Source: Perkinsela sp. CCAP 1560/9 (Eukaryota > Protista > Euglenozoa: Kinetoplastea). Taken from it: a stretch of DNA of 64,000 bases. The stretch is taken from the NCBI GenBank assembly GCA_965644495.1, contig CBFFSA010000002.1, positions 1,178,001-1,242,000 on the forward strand, in the 5' to 3' direction. Below are positions 45,835 to 60,560 of the stretch, piece after piece. Position 1 is the stretch's first letter, and each line of letters begins with the position of its first letter. The notes under the pieces are model-generated. The model saw only the letters and a program-made list of their open reading frames with translations. It was not told the DNA's origin and made no database searches. The position numbers and the translations under genes were made by a program.

Positions 45835-47613
45835 CTACACTACATCCGCGCACGTTATACTGGACACCACAACAATCACCTTAGATATCTTTCCCGGCGC
45901 CGCACTCTGCTCCCTTTGGTACGCTTGCGCTGCACCGTACAACCCTTCCCGTCTCCCTTGAGGTCTTGTTTTCCCTGCCCCTGCAACAGCCTCCCACATC
46001 CCCCTCCGGTTCCCCGGCCTCTCCCCTCCCTCCGTCGGTGCGTCCCGTTGGCTCGCGTCCCTGGGCAAGGGCTCGAGGAACGGCAACGAGAGCACCAGGG
46101 ACTGGACATTTAACTCCAGCACCACGGCCGTACAGAGTACGGTGCCATAGAGTGCATCACTCGCGGTAGCCCCCCGCATGAGGTACACAACCGTGTGTTG
46201 TAAATCCCGAGGCAGCGGGGCGTGAGGGAGAGGGGAAGCCTCGACAGCCGAAGCCATCTCCCCCCTCTCCATCTCGTTTATGTTTTTTACCCCCCCGAAT
46301 ACCTTTTCAGAGGTTAGGGGTTTACTCCTTTCCCCTTTCTTCGAGTGTAAACGAAAGAACTCCACCCGTTCTAACGGAATGGTGTGGGTCGCGGGACTCA
46401 CCCGCACCGACGCGGCTCCGTAGAACCACCGTTGCAGGTTCTCCCTCACCCGGAAACCGGAGGGAAGTGCCACCACCCCGGTCGACACAGGAAGACACTC
46501 CACACCTACCTTTAAAAAGGCAGCGGTTCTCCCCTCCCTATTGTTGTCACCCTTTTCTTCACCCCCTGGTTGACCGCGATGGGGTTGATCGCGATTTTGT
46601 TGACCGCGATTTTGTTGACCGCGATTTTGTTGACCGCGATTTTGTTGCTCGCGATTTTGTTGCTCGCGATTTTGTTGACCGCTCCCCACCCGGCTCGCGA
46701 TTTCATGCGCCAACCTGTCGTCGCCCAACACGACGACGTGGGTGACACGAAGCCGATCCACCACCCCCCCCACAGTCTCCAGCGCCATCCCGGGGGGGGT
46801 GTCAATGACCACCCCACCGGAGGCCACCGTGTCGTTGCTGTGATGCGTGAGGCGCTGCTCGGTGAGGTGACAGAGACGCTCGAGGGCGTGGGCATAAACC
46901 GCGGGGTCCTCGAACGGGCGAGCGGTCCCGACCGGGAGATGCAGCCCGTTGGTCCCCGCCACCGCGACCTCATCGATCGCGTTGGGGTGGTCCCAGGTGC
47001 AGGCGGTGAGGACCCCGGGGGGACCGGAGAGGGGGGCGTGGGGGTCGAGCTCGAGAAAGGTGGGGGTGTGACCGCAGCGGGCGGCGTAGTTCAGGAGGAT
47101 ACGACACAGGGTGGTTTTGCCGGAGCAGGGCGGGCCGAGGACGAGGGTGCGGGGCGAGGCCAGAGGGGGTGGGGAGGGGGGAGATGCGGCCTCGGTGGGG
47201 AGGCCACGCAGGCGGGCCTCGTGAAGCAGGCTGTGAAGTTCAGCGTAGAAACGCATGGGGGTGAAGCGTGAAATATACGCAGAGTGGAGTATTTTCGAAT
47301 TTGTGCATTGAAATTTTACGGTGCATCCTGTCCAGGAGAAGATGGCGAGGGAGCAGCCCCAAGGCAGGGTGTAGGCCACCCCAGGAAGAAGGGGAGCGCC
47401 AAAGATCTCGGCATGTGCTCTATGCTCCTCAAGTAAAGTGACTTCAGCAAGATGACTCGGTATTGAGGAATCCCCATCATCGCGAGAAAACGGAATGGGT
47501 AGGAAGATGCGGAGTTCGGACTCCGGACACAATACAAAGTTCTGAGTATCTGTGGGCACGTCAAGTTTTCCCTGTAAGTTGAAAGTTTCATGCCCTCTAG
47601 CGAGATAGTGCAT
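45835..47613 (-). CDS. CLP1: Clp1 polynucleotide kinase / cleavage-polyadenylation factor
   Basis: ESELR, AEIFGAPL, AIFSWTGC, P-loop GPPCSGKTTLCRILLNYAAR, GVVIDTP. Confidence 0.93.
   Translation of the reverse strand: MHYLARGHETFNLQGKLDVPTDTQNFVLCPESELRIFLPIPFSRDDGDSSIPSHLAEVTLLEEHRAHAEIFGAPLLPGVAYTLPWGCSLAIFSWTGCTVKFQCTNSKILHSAYISRFTPMRFYAELHSLLHEARLRGLPTEAASPPSPPPLASPRTLVLGPPCSGKTTLCRILLNYAARCGHTPTFLELDPHAPLSGPPGVLTACTWDHPNAIDEVAVAGTNGLHLPVGTARPFEDPAVYAHALERLCHLTEQRLTHHSNDTVASGGVVIDTPPGMALETVGGVVDRLRVTHVVVLGDDRLAHEIASRVGSGQQNREQQNREQQNRGQQNRGQQNRGQQNRDQPHRGQPGGEEKGDNNREGRTAAFLKVGVECLPVSTGVVALPSGFRVRENLQRWFYGAASVRVSPATHTIPLERVEFFRLHSKKGERSKPLTSEKVFGGVKNINEMERGEMASAVEASPLPHAPLPRDLQHTVVYLMRGATASDALYGTVLCTAVVLELNVQSLVLSLPFLEPLPRDASQRDAPTEGGERPGNRRGMWEAVAGAGKTRPQGRREGLYGAAQAYQREQSAAPGKISKVIVVVSSITCADVV
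46570..46681. repeat. 15-bp coding minisatellite in CLP1 (QQNRG/E repeats)
   Basis: About 7 units of GCGATTTTGTTG(AC/CT)C. Confidence 0.95.
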
Positions 47614-50698: not shown

Positions 50699-50812
50699 AA
50701 GTTATGCTTCACTAGCACCTGCTCAGGGCAGTGAAGCGCACTTCCTGCAACGGGCGGAGGTCGGACGCCTACCCCAGAACTGCAGCGCACGGACGAATGT
50801 TCGAGTAAATTT
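50699..50812. repeat. Inverted terminal repeat (3' end of element)
   Basis: Reverse complement of 57146-57259 with one mismatch. Confidence 0.97.
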
Positions 50813-51393
50813 GTTGAGTAAGTTTGTTTGTTTGTTTGGTACAAGAGCGCCTGCCATCCCCACAAGCAAGCGCCGCAAGTACCAACTCCGGCTCCCGGCT
50901 CAATCCGGGTACGGGGACGCAAAGCTCTCCTGGGGCGCTTCACTGGTGGCAAAGAACACTCTGTAGTATAATATACCTACTATGTGCCAGTCCCACTAGG
51001 AGGGTTCCCATTCAAGCACGTGCACCGCATTTATCATTCACTGCGTCAGAGCTTAAATGGACATTGATGACGTACTGCTTCTCGTACTTTATAAGCCTAA
51101 AATGTATACTTTTATAATTCTATGTAAATTGTATAATAGATTACTATTACGCAGTATCGTGATATCGATCGTAAGTATAGCACACTTAGGAAGAAGGTGG
51201 ACGTAAGAAATGTATACATCTTGAGGTGATGTGTATACACGCATTAGAGTGTATGTCATAAGTGTTTATGAACTGTTTATCACTAATGTAATAATAATAC
51301 ATGTGGATATGAGATAAAGCTTCATATAATAATACATGCGGATATGAGATAAAGCTTCCACTTATGCTTATAATGAGGAGGTATGGATAATTT

Positions 51394-53130
51394 CTACTTG
51401 TTTCTGCTTAGAAATGTTGTTCCATACGATTTATAAATTTGCCACGCCGTTTGAAGCTGTTCCCATGTTCTTGTACGACGAAAATCATACTCGGCGCGGC
51501 TGTACTCTTTTTGTGGGCGGGTCCCAATATCTGCGAGATTCATTTCGCTTGCGATGTCAGCTAAGACAATTCGCCCGTGAAAATATTGATGAACTCGTAT
51601 TATAGAATCCAATGCTTCAATTTTTGAAAATCCTTTGGCGAACGCACGAGACGCGGCCGTGTTATCGCTCGCAATTATTATGTTCGCGAATCCGCTGCGC
51701 ACTGCGATGCTTATCGCTTTGGATATTGCCGTCGCCTCGGCCAATACAATATCTAACTGACACTCTTGCTCTAAGACGTTTTCTTTTATGGGGAATCCGC
51801 CCTTCATAGGCCAAACGGCCCAGCGCGCTGTGGTCGCGTCTACAACGGCGAAGAAGGTTCGCTTATGTTCACACCTGCGATACATGGTGCAGTCTCGGGG
51901 AGTCGAGTTTGCGCGGATGATACGTAGGGCAGTTTTTAATAGGACCTCTCGTTCGCCCTGTTCGAAGATTATCCCATCCCAATTTTCCACTTCGCCTAAA
52001 ACACTTTGACATTTGCTCAATCTTCCTAGTCCTCGTGGTGATATTCCTAGTATAGTAGCTAAATGGCGCAAGTAGCCACAAAGTTGGAATAATATACGGG
52101 GTGTGATGCTTGACAGGTTTCTCGCTACCTTCAACCACTTTTGAGCTGTGGTCTCGTTTGCTGCCCAGGAAACACGGCCACCATTTTGAATAATTTGAAT
52201 ACCACAATAAGAAAATTTGCATGAACTTTTTTCTATCGTCAGATATTTTTCTAAGATATTGAACTTCCGGAAATTGTGCACCAGGTGTTCTCCCCACCGT
52301 TTTACCGTCGTCTCCGAAGCAACAATCATAAATGAGTCGTACATCAGCGCGATAAATCCTCCCTCACGAAGAGGTACGATCCCCGGAGCTTCAGTCATAT
52401 CAAGCATAGATTCAACGCCATTTAGGTCCGTGCTAGCGTGATCTCCGTAAATCAAAACATTCCACATGATGCTTTGCGCTATCCCGCAAGCTAACTTATA
52501 TCCCATTGGGAGAACAGTGGGACGAAGGTGTGTCGATCCCTGTCGAATGCAGCAGGCGTTCCCTAGTTCCGTTGAAATAGGGATCTGGTAGTACCAGTTC
52601 TTAATATCCCCGTGAAGGAAACGGAACCACCTTTCAGCGCAATCCCCAAGATGCAATAAGGATTGAATGAGCTGTTCCGTACTAGGAATAATAAAGGGGA
52701 TTCCTTCAATACATGTATGAAGGTTAGTGTAACGCAAATCAAATATAGCCCGTGCATGCACATCATCTTTCAGAACCGCCATGTACTTTCCAACTCCCGT
52801 AACTTGCTCCCGAGTCACGGGGACCAATACGTTGCAGTCCTTGAGCGCCTGCAGATGAGACCTGTAGTGTTGGGAGTCCGGATCATCTTTTTCTATGATC
52901 ATTTCTTGGGATGGGAAGGGGGACATTCCCAAGAGCGTTTTGGCATTATGTCCAAATTTAGTTTGGAACATATCGTCTGTCATAATCATGCCACCAATAT
53001 TTTTCAGGGGGCAGAGGGGGTCGCTGTCCTTAGCGTACGCTCCACGTATGGGAGCGTAGTTTTGCTGTAGGCTGAAATATCCGTTGTCCGATTCATGCTC
53101 AAGGTTTTTGAAACTCATCATAATATACAA
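51394..53130 (-). CDS. Reverse transcriptase-RNase H of the YR retroelement
   Basis: RAIFDLRYTN, HGDIKNWYYQIPI, VLPMG, MYDS at the YxDD position; RNase H VDAT / LAEA / SDN / NLADIGTR. Confidence 0.92.
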   Translation of the reverse strand: MYIMMSFKNLEHESDNGYFSLQQNYAPIRGAYAKDSDPLCPLKNIGGMIMTDDMFQTKFGHNAKTLLGMSPFPSQEMIIEKDDPDSQHYRSHLQALKDCNVLVPVTREQVTGVGKYMAVLKDDVHARAIFDLRYTNLHTCIEGIPFIIPSTEQLIQSLLHLGDCAERWFRFLHGDIKNWYYQIPISTELGNACCIRQGSTHLRPTVLPMGYKLACGIAQSIMWNVLIYGDHASTDLNGVESMLDMTEAPGIVPLREGGFIALMYDSFMIVASETTVKRWGEHLVHNFRKFNILEKYLTIEKSSCKFSYCGIQIIQNGGRVSWAANETTAQKWLKVARNLSSITPRILFQLCGYLRHLATILGISPRGLGRLSKCQSVLGEVENWDGIIFEQGEREVLLKTALRIIRANSTPRDCTMYRRCEHKRTFFAVVDATTARWAVWPMKGGFPIKENVLEQECQLDIVLAEATAISKAISIAVRSGFANIIIASDNTAASRAFAKGFSKIEALDSIIRVHQYFHGRIVLADIASEMNLADIGTRPQKEYSRAEYDFRRTRTWEQLQTAWQIYKSYGTTFLSRNK

Positions 53131-53395
53131 AACAGAAGAATATAAGAAACCGTTTTACGAGGAACAAATGTGGCATATTATTATGTTCCTGACATTACTG
53201 AATGACGAAACGGTACACTGTACATACATCGCAATGGTATGATAGTACACGCCTGTATATAGTGTGAAAGGAAATTGACATTGGATGAATAGTGTGTATG
53301 TGAAATGACACAAGGTTATATATTAGGCACAACGACCTGACTCACCTGTACACTACGGATAGCCATTGTTTCTCGTACAGAACAGATGGATAAGG

Positions 53396-54262
53396 CTATA
53401 TCATAGAATAAGCTTCTGCACTGAAGGATGGCATCCATCGGCCACGTAAAAGTCGCGTGGGGAGATCAACACCTTGGCGAGTCAGATGGCCAGCACCGCC
53501 ATGACGAAGACAGTGGAATGACCAGTTCTGTTGCCTATTCCACTCAAAGTGCACGGCTGATGCACGAATCAACGCGTTGGCCTTTACTTTGTTCCAGAAG
53601 GGTAGCAGAAGAACGGTGTTCCCGTCTTTTTTGAGGCAGGTCACTAGTTCCTGAACTTCCGGTACCTGGACGATGTCCACCTCATAGTGGAGACGACCTT
53701 TCCCACCGCGAATGTGAAGTGTCGCAGTTTCTCCTTCAACGTCGTTTCTGCGGAGCAACTCCAGTTCACTATGCCGTAGGAGGCAATAATAAGTTATGGC
53801 AAAGCCTCGAGCATATTCTGTTTCCCCGGCTTCCTGGCAGTATTCGGTCAGCTGCTTTAATTGATTAAAGGTGATTGAACCCCTGGGTTGTGGATCCAGG
53901 CACAAACGGGTGGCTCCTTTGAACCGCCGGCGAAAACGGATCGTTTGAGACCAGCATCGCTCTACGGGTTCATCTTCAAGCTGCCGCCACACTAGGGCGG
54001 AGCGTAGAGCCTCGAGCTTTGAGGCCCGATAAAACCTTGAGAGGCATGCGCAAAGAGCCAAGAACGCTTCTTCGGTTATGTTACACACACCGTGCACCCC
54101 CAAGAGATGCTCAATTCTTGAAAAGTCAAGAGAACGTCTTCGAGCAGTTTCTGGGGCGACAGCAAATTGAGAGAGCTGTGAATGCATATTAGCTTGAATC
54201 AGTCTTTGTGTATCAGCCTGTATAGCTTCATCACTTATACGGCGTCGTCTGGACCAGGCCAT
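53396..54262 (-). CDS. Tyrosine recombinase
   Basis: Full catalytic set: LLRHSEL (R), GGKG (K), FHCLRHGGA (HxxR), GRW (W), EAY (Y). Confidence 0.95.
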   Translation of the reverse strand: MAWSRRRRISDEAIQADTQRLIQANMHSQLSQFAVAPETARRRSLDFSRIEHLLGVHGVCNITEEAFLALCACLSRFYRASKLEALRSALVWRQLEDEPVERCWSQTIRFRRRFKGATRLCLDPQPRGSITFNQLKQLTEYCQEAGETEYARGFAITYYCLLRHSELELLRRNDVEGETATLHIRGGKGRLHYEVDIVQVPEVQELVTCLKKDGNTVLLLPFWNKVKANALIRASAVHFEWNRQQNWSFHCLRHGGAGHLTRQGVDLPTRLLRGRWMPSFSAEAYSMI

Positions 54263-54860
54263 AGTAATTATATTGTATATTCAAGAGAATGCATTAAAGT
54301 TTCTGCAACTGTTCTTTTATTTTGAACTAATTTTGGAGCCACACTAGGTCGATATTACTTTCGCGCCTTCGCGTTTTACCTATCCAAGTGGTGATGATTG
54401 GCTATTTTATGTAAGAGACTTTGCAGCTTTGCAAAGCTGTACGTGAACGAAAATATCATATCTACTGTATATAAATGAGAACCTATATTGAGAACTTCTC
54501 GCGTTATATTTGAGTCAAAGGAATTCTAATCAACAATTTTGGTAAAAGGTATTCGTTTTTAATCGTTAAAAACGCCGATATTGTAAAAAACGGATGGTGA
54601 GCCCACGTACTACGTGCGTTTTCTGTATTGTTAAAAACAATTTAAGGCAGGATACTACGCATTAAATAATTCTTTTTAAGAACAGATTTGTTTTTTCTCA
54701 AGCCCAATTATTCTGATCTGGATTTTTACCGTTTCGCAAAATTTTCGAAAGCACATTTTGAAGAGATAAGCAACATAACTATACGTGCCTGTAAACAATG
54801 GCCCCTACGTGTCTGTATCGATCGGTTAAAATGATTATATTAACTTTTTGCAACTCTGGG

Positions 54861-55996
54861 CTACTGCTTCCGAAACTTGTTGTTCTGAACCACTGGGCCA
54901 GAACGACTACGCTTGTAGGCGCTGTCTTGCCCGTGCAAGAAGTCGCTTGGTACGATCTTTACCGTGCAATCGCGGATTTCATGGCCTCTTTTTCCGCAGT
55001 GACGGCACGTACCGCGTGGAGCGCGTGGATAGTTCCACGCTTTGACGACTGAGGGGGGTTTACCGGGGTTGGTTCGCTTGTAGGCGTTTCGCACCACTGG
55101 GGTTTGAGGGGCCGAAGGGAATGTCCCAGCCGAAACCTTGCACACGGTGGTCACATTGCGGTTTACCATTGCTAACGCACGTTCGTGCCCCGCAAGAATG
55201 GCCACAATGGATTTATTGGTGGTTTCAGTATGGTTGTCGAGCATGAGGTGCTCGAGTGTCTCTACAGACACCGCAGCACCCTCATGCCGTAGGCGGTGCA
55301 TGAGCAACCAGCCCCCATCTTACACAGGAGGGACCAAATGCCGAGTCGCACGCCCTCAGAATTGATGCTTTCTATCGGGGCATCAGGAGGGGAGTCTGCC
55401 AAAAGCTTGGCGTAGTACACCATGTCAGGCCGGTTGTCTACCGACTCCTTCACTGCCTTCTGTACGTGTGGCGAGAGCCACGTTTCTGTACTGAAACCGG
55501 TGTCCGTTAGGCACTGGTGCAGTTGGACACGGCAGCGAGGGTCTTTGCGCGTCCCAATAAGACTACAAAAGGCTTTTCGTAGGTCCTTATTGCTTTGGTC
55601 TCCGCGAGTGGGAGTTTCTGTTTCTGCGACCGGGACAGCTTCAGAGTGTTCCAACTCTGCCTCAAGCGCGCAAAGCGCATCTCGCAAGTTGACGACAACA
55701 GCTTGGGAGACGTTGCCGGATGAAAAATCGCCGCGCACCATCGCAGCAAGAGTCCGTCGAACTATACGTGCTCCATTCACAGTATTTCCCTTTGCCGCCG
55801 TGGCAGCAGCACTCTCAAGGATGGGAGTCATCGACTTCTTTCCTTTCACATACTGAATTGCTTTGGGTAGAATCCCAACTAATTCTTCGCGAACCGTTAC
55901 TCCCAAACGTTTTAGGGAGCAGAGCTCTAGAAAAGCACACTTTGGGCTGTGTGCGGCGTAATTTTCTGGGAGAAGGGAAGGTAAAGCCTCTGGCAT
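54861..55996 (-). CDS. Gag-like protein with CCHC zinc knuckle, split by one frameshift
   Basis: CRHCGKRGHEIRDC in ORF 54861-55307; it joins ORF 55262-56011 if one G is added to the G5 run (C5 at 55312-55316). Confidence 0.8.
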
Positions 55997-56239
55997 GAAA
56001 TGAGTCAGCAAGTAAGAAAGTATTGTGTATACAGAGAGACATCGTTCTCAATATTTTTCCAGTCGAGCACGTCTCCTACTTTCGTTTCAATAACGTGATG
56101 TAACTAGTTGCACTTATTGTGCGCAGATCGATCCCGAAAATTACTGTAAATTCGACAGTCTAAGGCCATTACATAAACTAAAGTATGCTTTCTTTCATAT
56201 CTGTGAACATCTCTAGTTCTATAAGGGCCCACAGGCCTT

Positions 56240-56958
56240 CGCCCCGTGGCGAACTAAATTACTCCTGATTGAGTATTTTCTGTAGTCACGGACTCAACAA
56301 GCCCTGTGGCGAAACTAAATTACTTCTGAATGAGTGTTCTCTATGGAGTCAAGGACTCAACACGCCCTGCGGCGAAAAAGTCAATTTACTCCTGAATGAG
56401 TATTCTCTGTGGGAGAGTCAAGGACTCAACACACCCTGTGGCAAAAAACTAAATTTACTCCTGAATGAGTATTCTCTATAGAGTCAAGGACTCAACACGC
56501 CCTGTGGCGGAACTAAATTTACTCCTGAATGAGTATTCTCTATAGAGTCAAGGACCCAACACGCCCTGTGGCGAAACCAAATTTACTCCTGAATGAGTAT
56601 TCTCTATAGAGTCAAGGACTCAGCACGCCCTGTGGCGGACCTAAATTTACTCCGGATTTAGTATCCTCTATGGGAGAGTCAAGGACTCAACACGCCCTGT
56701 GGCAGAACTAAATTACTCCTGAATGAGTATTCTCTGTGGGAGAGTCAAGGACTCAACACGCCCTGTGGCGAAACTAAATTTACTCCTGAAAGAGTATTCT
56801 CTATAGAGTCAAGGACTCAACACGCCCTGTGGCGGAACTAAATTACTCCTGAATGAGTATTCTCTATAGAGTCAAGGACTCAGCACGCCCTGCGGCGAAA
56901 CTAAATTACTCCTGAATGAGTATTCTCTGTGGGAGAGTCAAGGACTGAACACGCCCTA
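56240..56958. repeat. Tandem array of ~11 multi-hairpin units of ~64 bp
   Basis: Consensus CGCCCTGTGGCGAAACTAAATTTACTCCTGAATGAGTATTCTCTATAGAGTCAAGGACTCAACA. Confidence 0.97.
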
Positions 56959-57145
56959 CGACAAAAAAAACTGAACTGATCTTTGCTCGTTGGTGCTTGT
57001 GGGTGTTGTGAGCGCGTTCCTTCGGTTGGTTGTATGGCACGCTTCATGTATGGTAATAGTGTCTTTACGAAGAAGGAAAAAAATAGAAAAACTGAAGTGT
57101 AAAGGTTATGTAGTGTTAACTCGACCTTTTCGTAGAATAAAAATA

Positions 57146-57259
57146 AAATTTACTCGAACATTCGTCCGTGCGCTGCAGTTCTGGGGTAGGCGTGCGACCT
57201 CCGCCCGTTGCAGGAAGTGCGCTTCACTGCCCTGAGCAGGTGCTAGTGAAGCATAACTT
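57146..57259. repeat. Inverted terminal repeat (5' end of element)
   Basis: Reverse complement of 50699-50812. Confidence 0.97.
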
Positions 57260-57469
57260 CCTATTACATGGCGCGGTCTCCTTTAACCCTGCTGGGACAA
57301 AGCCGATAGTCGGACGCCGACCCCCCCCCCCTCTTCTTTTCCTGCGCTGCAATACTTGGAAACTTCCTTCCATCACCATTTTCACTACTGCGCAACAATC
57401 AGTTAGTGACCCCGGGATTTGGACCGGTACAGCAGGGTTAAAGGAGACCGCGCCATGTAATAGGAAGTT
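57255..57469. mobile_element. MITE-like element with perfect 40-bp inverted repeats
   Basis: AACTTCCTATTACATGGCGCGGTCTCCTTTAACCCTGCTG at 57255-57294 and its reverse complement at 57430-57469. Confidence 0.85.
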
Positions 57470-57519
57470 GTAATTAGCTTTTTTGACCCCTACCTGGCTA
57501 GAGGGGGTAGGGGGTCGCC

Positions 57520-57644
57520 CGAGTGAAAAGGACCTCGGATTCGGAACGATTGGGTCGAAAAACGGTGGTGTACCAAATATTTCCAAAATCGGACAAAATA
57601 CAAGACCTGTAGGGGGGGGGGGTAAAAGACGCTGAACACCACTG
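57520..57644. mobile_element. Solo end of the Tc1-type MITE family
   Basis: Matches 41253-41372 and ends CCACTG-TA. Confidence 0.8.
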
Positions 57645-58499
57645 TAGAGGTAATGTACTATAAACAAAATAAAGTTTGTATTTTCTCACCATCTGCCTCC
57701 AGCATAGAAATCAACCATTTGCGCTTTTCTGTAAGAAATTTCTTCGAAGGGCGTCTATCCACGTTCACAAAATAATCCATCTTAAGTAGAATAAAAGAAA
57801 AAATTCTTTGGTTTAGAAAAAAATTAAGAAATAGCGTTCGATTAATTTCTGATTTATAAAAATAAATGATCCCGCATAAACTAAATTTTTATAACTCGAA
57901 ATCCATTTATATAAATTAATGAGAGAGGGAGTATTATAGTAGCTGTCTACTTGAGAACTCTTTCGCTTCTCGAGACAGTCGAAGCCAAACCCTCCAGGCG
58001 AAAAGGACCGAAACCAGCTCATCTATTGGCCGCAAAATATATAAAAAAAGTTACAAGGTTACAAGATTACAACAAGGGGGTGACGTATTCAATTGAAATG
58101 ATTTTCCTCCCCGATTCCATATTCTGATACTTTATGACCCATGGACTCAACGGGACATTAGTACAAGCTTGAAGCGCAGTACTGTGTAAAATGGGAGCCG
58201 CTGTGTTAAGTTTCCATCTTCTGCAAGAAAGAGCTGCTCTATCAACAGAGTTCTTCGGAGCATTGCACCACCGATCATAAATAATAATAATTCTCTGCAC
58301 CCTTGTTGATGCTGAGAGAGACACCATTCGGGTGACCGGGATTTAAATGGGTACATAAGACGGTGGACAAGGTACTTTATAGTTTATATCTGAACACCGT
58401 AAGACGGATGGGGTACGTCATTAAGTCTTAATGAACATCTTAAGATGATGTCGCCGTGACTTTTGTGCTCATGACTCCAAAATCATTTTTGAAACTCTT

Positions 58500-60415: not shown

Positions 60416-60560
60416 GTCGGTTGCAGTGCGCCCCTCCGGCTGCGTAAAGAGGTGGTGAGTTGCCTGGACCGCCTCTACCGACTGGGACCGAGTCGGTTGC
60501 AGTGCGCCCCTCCGGCTGCGTAAAGAGAGGGCGAGTTGCCTGGACCCCCTCTACCGACAG
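60416..60560. repeat. Two-copy direct repeat, period 76 bp
   Basis: GTCGGTTGCAGTGCGCCCCTCCGGCTGCGTAAAGAG...CCTCTACCGAC twice. Confidence 0.9.

Follow-up and report, generated by a model that had tools for sequence, protein, structure and literature searches.

A tandem-repeat module in the leader of a predicted tyrosine-recombinase retroelement and its counterparts in related families

Does an array of short tandem repeats that is found between the 5′ ITR and the gag gene of a retroelement serve this element, and, if it does, are the small hairpins within each unit what matters? The question is raised by the window analysed here (the whole stretch of 64,000 nucleotides), in which the initial annotation had described about 11 units of ~64 bp with four hairpins each and had seen in them a structured array of RNA or single-stranded DNA. 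The repeat itself is confirmed by Tandem Repeats Finder, which reports 11.1 copies with a period of 64 and 87% matches and in addition a higher-order period of 261 bp corresponding to four units. We consider in turn the element, the conservation of the unit, the leaders of related elements and the possible functions.

The array and the element that carries it

The excised 11 units, aligned on the sense (minus) strand, have a mean column identity of 89%. A typical unit reads on the plus strand CGCC-ctgt-GGCG, TACTC-ctgaat-GAGTA, CTCT-at-AGAG and GAGTC-aag-GACTC, and the loop variants listed in the initial annotation (ctgc, ccgt, ctgaaa, ctgatt and gtggg) all occur in the units. The decay of the units toward gag was also described correctly: the edge of the array that faces the ITR is sharp and is closed by a truncated twelfth unit, and the units facing gag are degenerate, most of all the two at 56240–56362. 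The array has expanded by block duplication, the block consisting here of four units. A protein-coding array was rejected, as the period of 64 is no multiple of 3 and only one antisense ORF of 70 aa crosses the repeat.

We take the array to be a module of tandem repeats that belongs to the 5′ leader of a tyrosine-recombinase retroelement of ~6.8 kb in a kinetoplastid-type host. The element lies on the minus strand (span ~50699–57469) and its genes follow each other in the order gag, tyrosine recombinase and RT/RNase H, an order that its relatives share. On the sense strand the 5′ end with a twister-like motif is followed by the ITR/splint, a spacer of 188 nt, the 11 units of 64 nt and, about 229 nt further downstream, the gag ORF (Table 1). 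Four public contig sets, all from one study, support parts of the locus and both edges of the array. In the one public run that may contain RNA, no sequence of the locus was found. Near the frame change of gag (55262–55307) contigs from three public runs show a length difference of one letter, and the length of gag there differs between copies or samples.

Table 1. Features of the element in the window and of related loci. Positions without a locus name are those of the window.
Feature	Position	Strand	Remarks
Outer arm of the 40-nt inverted repeat	57430–57469	−	Probable 5′ terminus of the element
Twister-P1-like ribozyme motif, weak	57366–57444	−	20.2 bits, E 0.43; gathering score 67.2
Inner arm of the perfect 40-nt inverted repeat	57255–57294	−	Putative ICR-like splint together with the ITR end
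Left ITR	57146–57259	−	114 nt, 99% complementary to 50699–50812
Non-repeated spacer, ITR/splint to array	56958–57145	−	Starts with the truncated twelfth unit and an A-run (plus strand)
Leader tandem array	56240–56957	−	11 units of 60–69 bp, consensus 64 bp, head-to-tail
Leader remainder, array to gag ORF	56012–56239	−	Unalignable with the leader of the contig-9 relative
gag	54861–56011	−	Two overlapping frames, 55262–56011 and 54861–55307; CCHC zinc knuckle in the second
Tyrosine recombinase ORF	53396–54262	−	PF00589, 36.5 bits
RT/RNase H ORF	51394–53130	−	578 aa; weak Pfam matches only
Right ITR	50699–50812	−	Inverted-repeat partner of 57146–57259
Twister-P1-like motif, other loci	L067:2138–2205, L073:2235–2305, L074:43–113, L068:65–136		
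Leader of L040 and L042			68 bp × 2–3, hairpin of 9–10 bp; adjoins the ITR, upstream of gag
Leader of L050 and L071			127 bp × 4.4 and × 8.4
Leader of L052			71–75 bp × 5, then ~600 bp of (TTAG)n-type microsatellite
Leader of L068 and L069			63 bp × 9.4 and × 2.4
Leader of L073 and L074	L073 ~1219–1889 (locus plus strand; 463–1133 on the sense strand), L074:458–972		78 bp (two halves of 39 nt) × 8.6 and × 6.6; one cUUCGg hairpin per half
Leader of L067			Arrays of 28 bp and 31 bp
Leader of L070			57 bp × 1.9
Leader of L048			372 bp × 2
Leader of L049 and L072			Plain microsatellites
Leader of L044			Without array; ITR to gag ~250 nt
(TTAG)n/(TCAG)n/(TTAC)n, terminal structure to gag	L052:3200–3830, L049:3186–3800		Several hundred bases
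(TTAG)n/(TCAG)n/(TTAC)n-type leader microsatellite of L072	~1179–1697 (locus plus strand; 655–1173 on the sense strand)		

Matches to the ITRs are also present at other genomic copies, and inverted pairs homologous to the 40-nt pair are found in L040, L044 and L052 with a spacing of 135–540 nt. On the plus strand the sequence at ~57248–57294, which comprises the ITR end and the inner arm, can be read as the 3′ end of the element (50699–50718) followed by its 5′ end (57430–57469), with AACTT as the stretch common to both. We read the ITR end together with the inner arm as an ICR-like splint, which would thus be placed on the 5′ side. Of a DIRS1-like element one would expect ITRs and an internal region complementary to the joined ends. 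ITRs are present, and the stretch at ~57248–57294 may be such a region; it is, however, situated towards the 5′ end, and the genes are not arranged as in DIRS1. With regard to the order gag, recombinase and RT/RNase H as well as to the host group, the element resembles VIPER/TATE of kinetoplastids (PMC6681497). VIPER/TATE have split direct repeats of the form A1 ... B1 A2 B2, and their description contains no leader arrays (PMC6681497). The element of the window, on the contrary, has no split direct repeats but 114-nt ITRs and the 40-nt inverted pair with the splint at the 5′ side.

The RT/RNase H ORF has 74 relatives in the genome. The RT motif which is normally YxDD is YDS in this ORF (52333–52344). 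An alignment with nine relatives, the most distant of them 25% identical, shows no change at Y264 or D265, so that YDS is a trait of the family and not a lesion.

The twister-P1-like motif is located between the two 40-nt arms on the sense strand. No part of the window matches Rfam at the gathering thresholds, and the array has no match even at E ≤ 5 (55900–57900 searched). Genome-wide there are 54 twister-P1-like matches, all of them under the Rfam gathering score and the best at ~39 bits; in other families the copies at the corresponding position reach 25.7–39.1 bits, and in many families the motif is situated 4–6.5 kb upstream of an RT match and on the strand of this match. Both helices, P1 and P2, are retained across families despite differing sequences. 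Where the copy in the window deviates from the consensus of the model is the loop in the stem after P2 (CCAAAUCCC) and the GAGGG segment. With all scores below gathering we regard it as a lead that a twister-like ribozyme may head these retroelements. Because the motif is upstream on the same strand, we propose that the array would be part of the processed leader RNA.

The host has a eukaryote genome of 21 Mb with long intronless ORFs, and the ORFs of the window are mostly on one strand. A short pattern for the kinetoplastid spliced-leader core matches the genome at five dispersed places with one mismatch each (C3:214246, C5:790775, C9:532533, C12:255060 and C21:14576; CAGTTTCTGTACTTTGTTG in four of the five), and a control pattern gave 0 matches. 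We take this as a sign of a host of the kinetoplastid type, whose spliced-leader genes are dispersed. The assembly also holds two unlike SSU rRNA genes of eukaryote type with a length of 2.0–2.1 kb (C11:510796–512820, 2025 nt, 1417 bits; C58:32767–34872, 2106 nt, 1650 bits), which could be divergent paralogues or could come from a second organism in the assembly. Two further repeats of the window may be mentioned here. A GC-rich repeat of 76 bp × 1.9 (60416–60558) recurs reverse-complemented at L019:4483–4623 and L031:2819–2961, both near RT matches of retroelements, and is thus dispersed and not a unique island. A 15-bp tandem repeat of the GTTGACCGCGATTTT type with seven registers is found at 46554–46697 within the region of a CLP1-like ORF.

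Conservation of the unit and the case for hairpins

The initial annotation had named absence from other element copies, or occurrence elsewhere as an unlinked minisatellite, as an argument against a role in the element. We searched the 21-Mb genome by BLAST with four units and with a pattern uniting two of the palindromes and found the 64-bp unit only here and in a relative on contig 9 (L041), at both loci between ITR and gag. L041 is diverged and truncated at its 5′ side, and its sense order is ITR, homologous units and gag. Its array has about 4–5 homologous units of 62–94 nt, which again decay toward gag; the comparison of copy number between element copies proposed earlier thus gives 11 against about 4–5. 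L041 lacks the spacer of the window element. A diverged lineage has a homologous array in the corresponding position, and the array belongs to the element. The only near-identical second copy, on contig 7 (98%), was dropped from this comparison, being truncated inside gag and carrying an inserted stretch. Among the JGI metagenome contigs the pattern of the unit junction had 0 matches; a protein-guided search of JGI yielded 13 remote RT relatives on contigs that are too short to include the leader.

The gag proteins of the two lineages are 69% identical, the third codon positions of gag 47% and the four-fold degenerate sites 45% (31/69). No alignment was possible for the leader stretch that separates the array from gag, where the local score was 23 compared with 19.6 ± 2.4 for shuffled sequences. 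Unit by unit, in contrast, the arrays are 73–90% identical, with counts of 52/62 to 57/63, and the two consensus sequences agree at 54/64 or 84%. Neutral drift of the 64-nt unit is therefore unlikely, since 84% were kept while synonymous sites came near saturation. Two explanations are left, purifying selection on the unit, or an exchange of the segment of ITR and array between the lineages after their gag genes had split. An exchange could have produced the 84%, because the ITRs are 86–88% identical as well. We consider selection more likely, as constraint on the ITRs is expected anyway.

What would be selected is a different matter. The four palindromes proposed for each unit are all present, but they do not make four hairpins: CTCT/AGAG and GAGTC/GACTC have three bases in common, so that all four cannot coexist, and the predicted fold of one unit shows three hairpins. 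A unit contains 5 stems of 4 bp or more, where dinucleotide shuffles lead one to expect 1.3 (P = 0.02), and 2 stems of 5 bp or more, where 0.32 are expected (P = 0.06). The palindrome content is only marginally above chance, and the excess counts as a single observation and not as eleven since all 11 units are copies of one.

The initial annotation had also described several variants that change loops and keep stems, besides some that hit stems, and had proposed to examine covariation across units and copies. Over 18 pairs in 11 units 0 compensatory changes were found, and there is none between the units of the window and those of contig 9, a test of low power as the 64-bp unit exists in two lineages only. 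Between the lineages the stems are identical at 29/33 positions (88%), the linkers at 14/16 (88%) and the loops at 11/15 (73%), which is uniform across the unit (Fisher P = 0.5); the linker A(A/G)TTTAGTT is conserved like any stem. Within the array, variant alleles occur in 10 of the 33 stem columns and in 14 of the 31 others, a weak trend that is not significant. In the contig-9 relative the TACTC/GAGTA stem is broken, and CGCC/GGCG, GAGTC/GACTC and a palindrome of the CTCT/AGAG type persist with changed loops.

Folding adds little to this. The z-scores for RNA are −1.15 and −0.07 for single units and −2.04 for a stretch of four units, and local folds of the tandem give −1.8 for the sense and −2.1 for the antisense strand. 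When compared with random genomic 64-mers, the tandem fold of the unit is at the 17th percentile. The two strands do not differ in how well they fold, which leaves no way to distinguish between RNA, single-stranded DNA and palindromes in double-stranded DNA. Also a strand test based on G-U wobbles, made by eye, had too few changes, with ~4 compatible with the sense and 2–3 with the antisense strand. Taken together, the missing covariation, the equal conservation of stems and linkers, the broken stem in the relative and the weak z-scores do not bear out a structured array. The hairpins are not well supported as the functional part and form the weakest part of the reading; the constraint appears to act on the sequence of the whole unit and not specifically on four small hairpins.

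Leader repeats across the superfamily

The leaders of other families were located via RT relatives, ITR matches and twister-like matches. Arrays are found in most of these leaders at the same place (Table 1), yet their sequences are unrelated and their periods range from 28 to 127 bp. In all arrays examined the 5′ edge is sharp and the final unit at the gag side is decayed. The copy number varies between element copies also in the other families, as seen for the 127-bp, 63-bp and 78-bp units. The 64-bp unit has no similarity to the 71-bp and 127-bp units. With the 68-bp unit its homology is confined to a motif of 19 nt, CGCCAC[AG]G[GA]GCG[TC]GT[TG]GAG (15/19, P ~0.01–0.02).

The self-complementarity of the units compared with shuffles gave sense z-scores of −1.8, −2.6, −2.3, −2.3, −1.4, −1.9 and −6.1, and of −0.1 and +0.8 in two families. 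The shift is thus an overall one and not universal, and it could equally reflect the origin of the duplications, for example, slippage at hairpins. In the 78-bp arrays the two halves of the unit differ by a compensatory change of C-G to U-A (GGTCC-TTCG-GGACT versus GGTTC-TTCG-GAACT). Across the families the leader repeat module is typical of the superfamily, is replaced from family to family and varies in copy number, and in the family of the window element it has been kept above the neutral level.

Possible functions and known systems

We suggest that the array is a cis-acting multimerised recognition platform in the 5′ leader of the element, a tentative reading to which we assign a probability of about 0.4. 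A function in cis with the element's own machinery is plausible. The units would be recognized on the full-length leader RNA or on its cDNA by a protein of the element, most likely the CCHC Gag, whose binding we purely infer. In this way the array would label the genomic RNA as the one to be assembled into particles, and the number of units would tune the strength of the signal. One may speculate that gag mRNAs are trans-spliced downstream of the array, which would then be present on the genomic RNA only, like the packaging signals of retroviruses. An array is not indispensable, as L044 goes without one and the leader of other families is filled with (TTAG)n.

The same two facts are expected if the array were a nearly neutral minisatellite in a leader that tolerates insertions, where slippage, unequal exchange or template switching of the RT would duplicate palindromic stretches and these would turn over without function. 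The free variation of unit sequence, period and copy number among the families would follow as well, and so would the missing covariation, the lack of a significant difference between stem and other columns in variant alleles and the unexceptional fold of the unit among genomic 64-mers. A neutral repeat would not be expected to remain 84% identical between lineages which retain 45% at the four-fold sites of gag and whose remaining leader is unalignable. Nor does it account for the recurrence of arrays in this position in nearly all families or for the enrichment of self-complementarity over independent families. We regard a nearly neutral minisatellite as rather unlikely.

The sequence-level conservation, which includes the linkers, would suit sites that are recognized in double-stranded DNA. 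The interrupted palindromes with the spacing 5-3-5 and 4-4-4 might be accessory (arm-type) sites that aid the assembly of the recombinase on the adjacent ITR/splint, or the units might act as promoter or enhancer elements like the monomers of L1. Symmetric palindromes, the equal folding of both strands and the position of the array next to the ITR/splint are in agreement with such sites, family-specific palindromes with short loops recur in other families, and for promoter units a precedent is documented in the monomer arrays of L1 (PMC9022269). Nevertheless, a promoter of its own is less necessary for an element that is co-oriented with the flanking ORFs of the same strand and has a ribozyme-like motif for 5′ processing. 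Compared with the core sites known for recombinases, the palindrome arms of the array are far shorter, which counts against this possibility too. In addition, the sister family represented by L073 and L074 has UUCG loops together with the compensatory change in the stem, and the UUCG loop is a motif typical of RNA and not of DNA. Sites at the DNA level thus seem doubtful to us.

In RNAi-competent kinetoplastids transcripts of retroelements and satellites dominate the small interfering RNAs, and this is the sole point for the idea that transcripts of the array feed or decoy the silencing of retroelements by the host. Inverted copies of the array that could give long double-stranded RNA are not present, and the constraint on the sequence of the 64-nt unit would be left unexplained. 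That small RNAs arise from the array or are directed against it is very improbable.

The recognition platform may also be conceived more broadly, namely that a whole ribozyme-headed superfamily of this kinetoplastid lineage, and perhaps its LINEs too, depends in cis on family-specific stem–loop arrays as an obligatory module, which on the uncapped, ribozyme-cut RNA would recruit Gag or ribosomes and would co-evolve with the recruited protein. If arrays co-evolve with Gag, as we propose here, it would be explained that each family has its own unit which is conserved within the family. In this obligatory form we consider the proposal unlikely.

The closest parallel is provided by the 5′ UTR monomers of mouse L1, which like the array are head-to-tail units between the 5′ end and the first ORF (PMC9022269). 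The mouse L1 subfamilies have repeatedly replaced their 5′ monomers, and as in the families described here the units are unrelated between subfamilies, vary in copy number and are followed by a non-repeated stretch before the ORF (PMC9022269). The L1 monomers are units of ~200 bp in a LINE and were shown to be promoter units (PMC9022269), whereas the array has units of 64 bp, and belongs to a tyrosine-recombinase retroelement in a host with spliced-leader cores. Retrotransposons are known to carry tandem repeats in their untranslated regions (PMC9659126, PMC7004042). Those of LTR-retrotransposons, for example, in the 3′ UTR of Ogre, are like the array variable non-coding internal minisatellites that have grown by duplication, and the Ogre repeats seed satellites (PMC9659126, PMC7004042). 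The plant UTR arrays are hypervariable and often occur as free satellites (PMC9659126, PMC7004042). On the contrary, the 64-bp unit is found inside elements only, with two loci genome-wide, and has been conserved across lineages.

In its position the array can be compared to two leader signals of other retroelements. The psi signal of retroviruses and LTR-retrotransposons is located in the leader between the 5′ repeat and gag and consists of short stem–loops, present as a single copy and with an experimentally supported structure. The array shares with psi the position in the leader, the short stem–loops and the zinc-knuckle Gag encoded just downstream; it differs in having 11 repeated units and a predicted structure without support from covariation. 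In Drosophila, the 5′ UTR of gypsy has a cluster of Su(Hw) sites, which is bound on the DNA by a zinc-finger protein of the host and acts as an insulator. This cluster is a multimerised short motif for protein binding between the 5′ repeat and gag, to which the array is comparable by position.

A description of leader arrays in tyrosine-recombinase retroelements was not found in the literature that we searched. To our knowledge these elements are the least understood retrotransposons, and we know of no cis signals in their RNA. If the array were merely tolerated junk, it would be an ordinary minisatellite within a transposon. A repeat module is found in nearly every family of the superfamily and always between the end-joining structure and gag. 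After mouse L1 this is a second independent case of retroelement subfamilies which repeatedly replace their leader repeats, and the leader repeat module offers a concrete handle for experiments on binding, packaging or expression.
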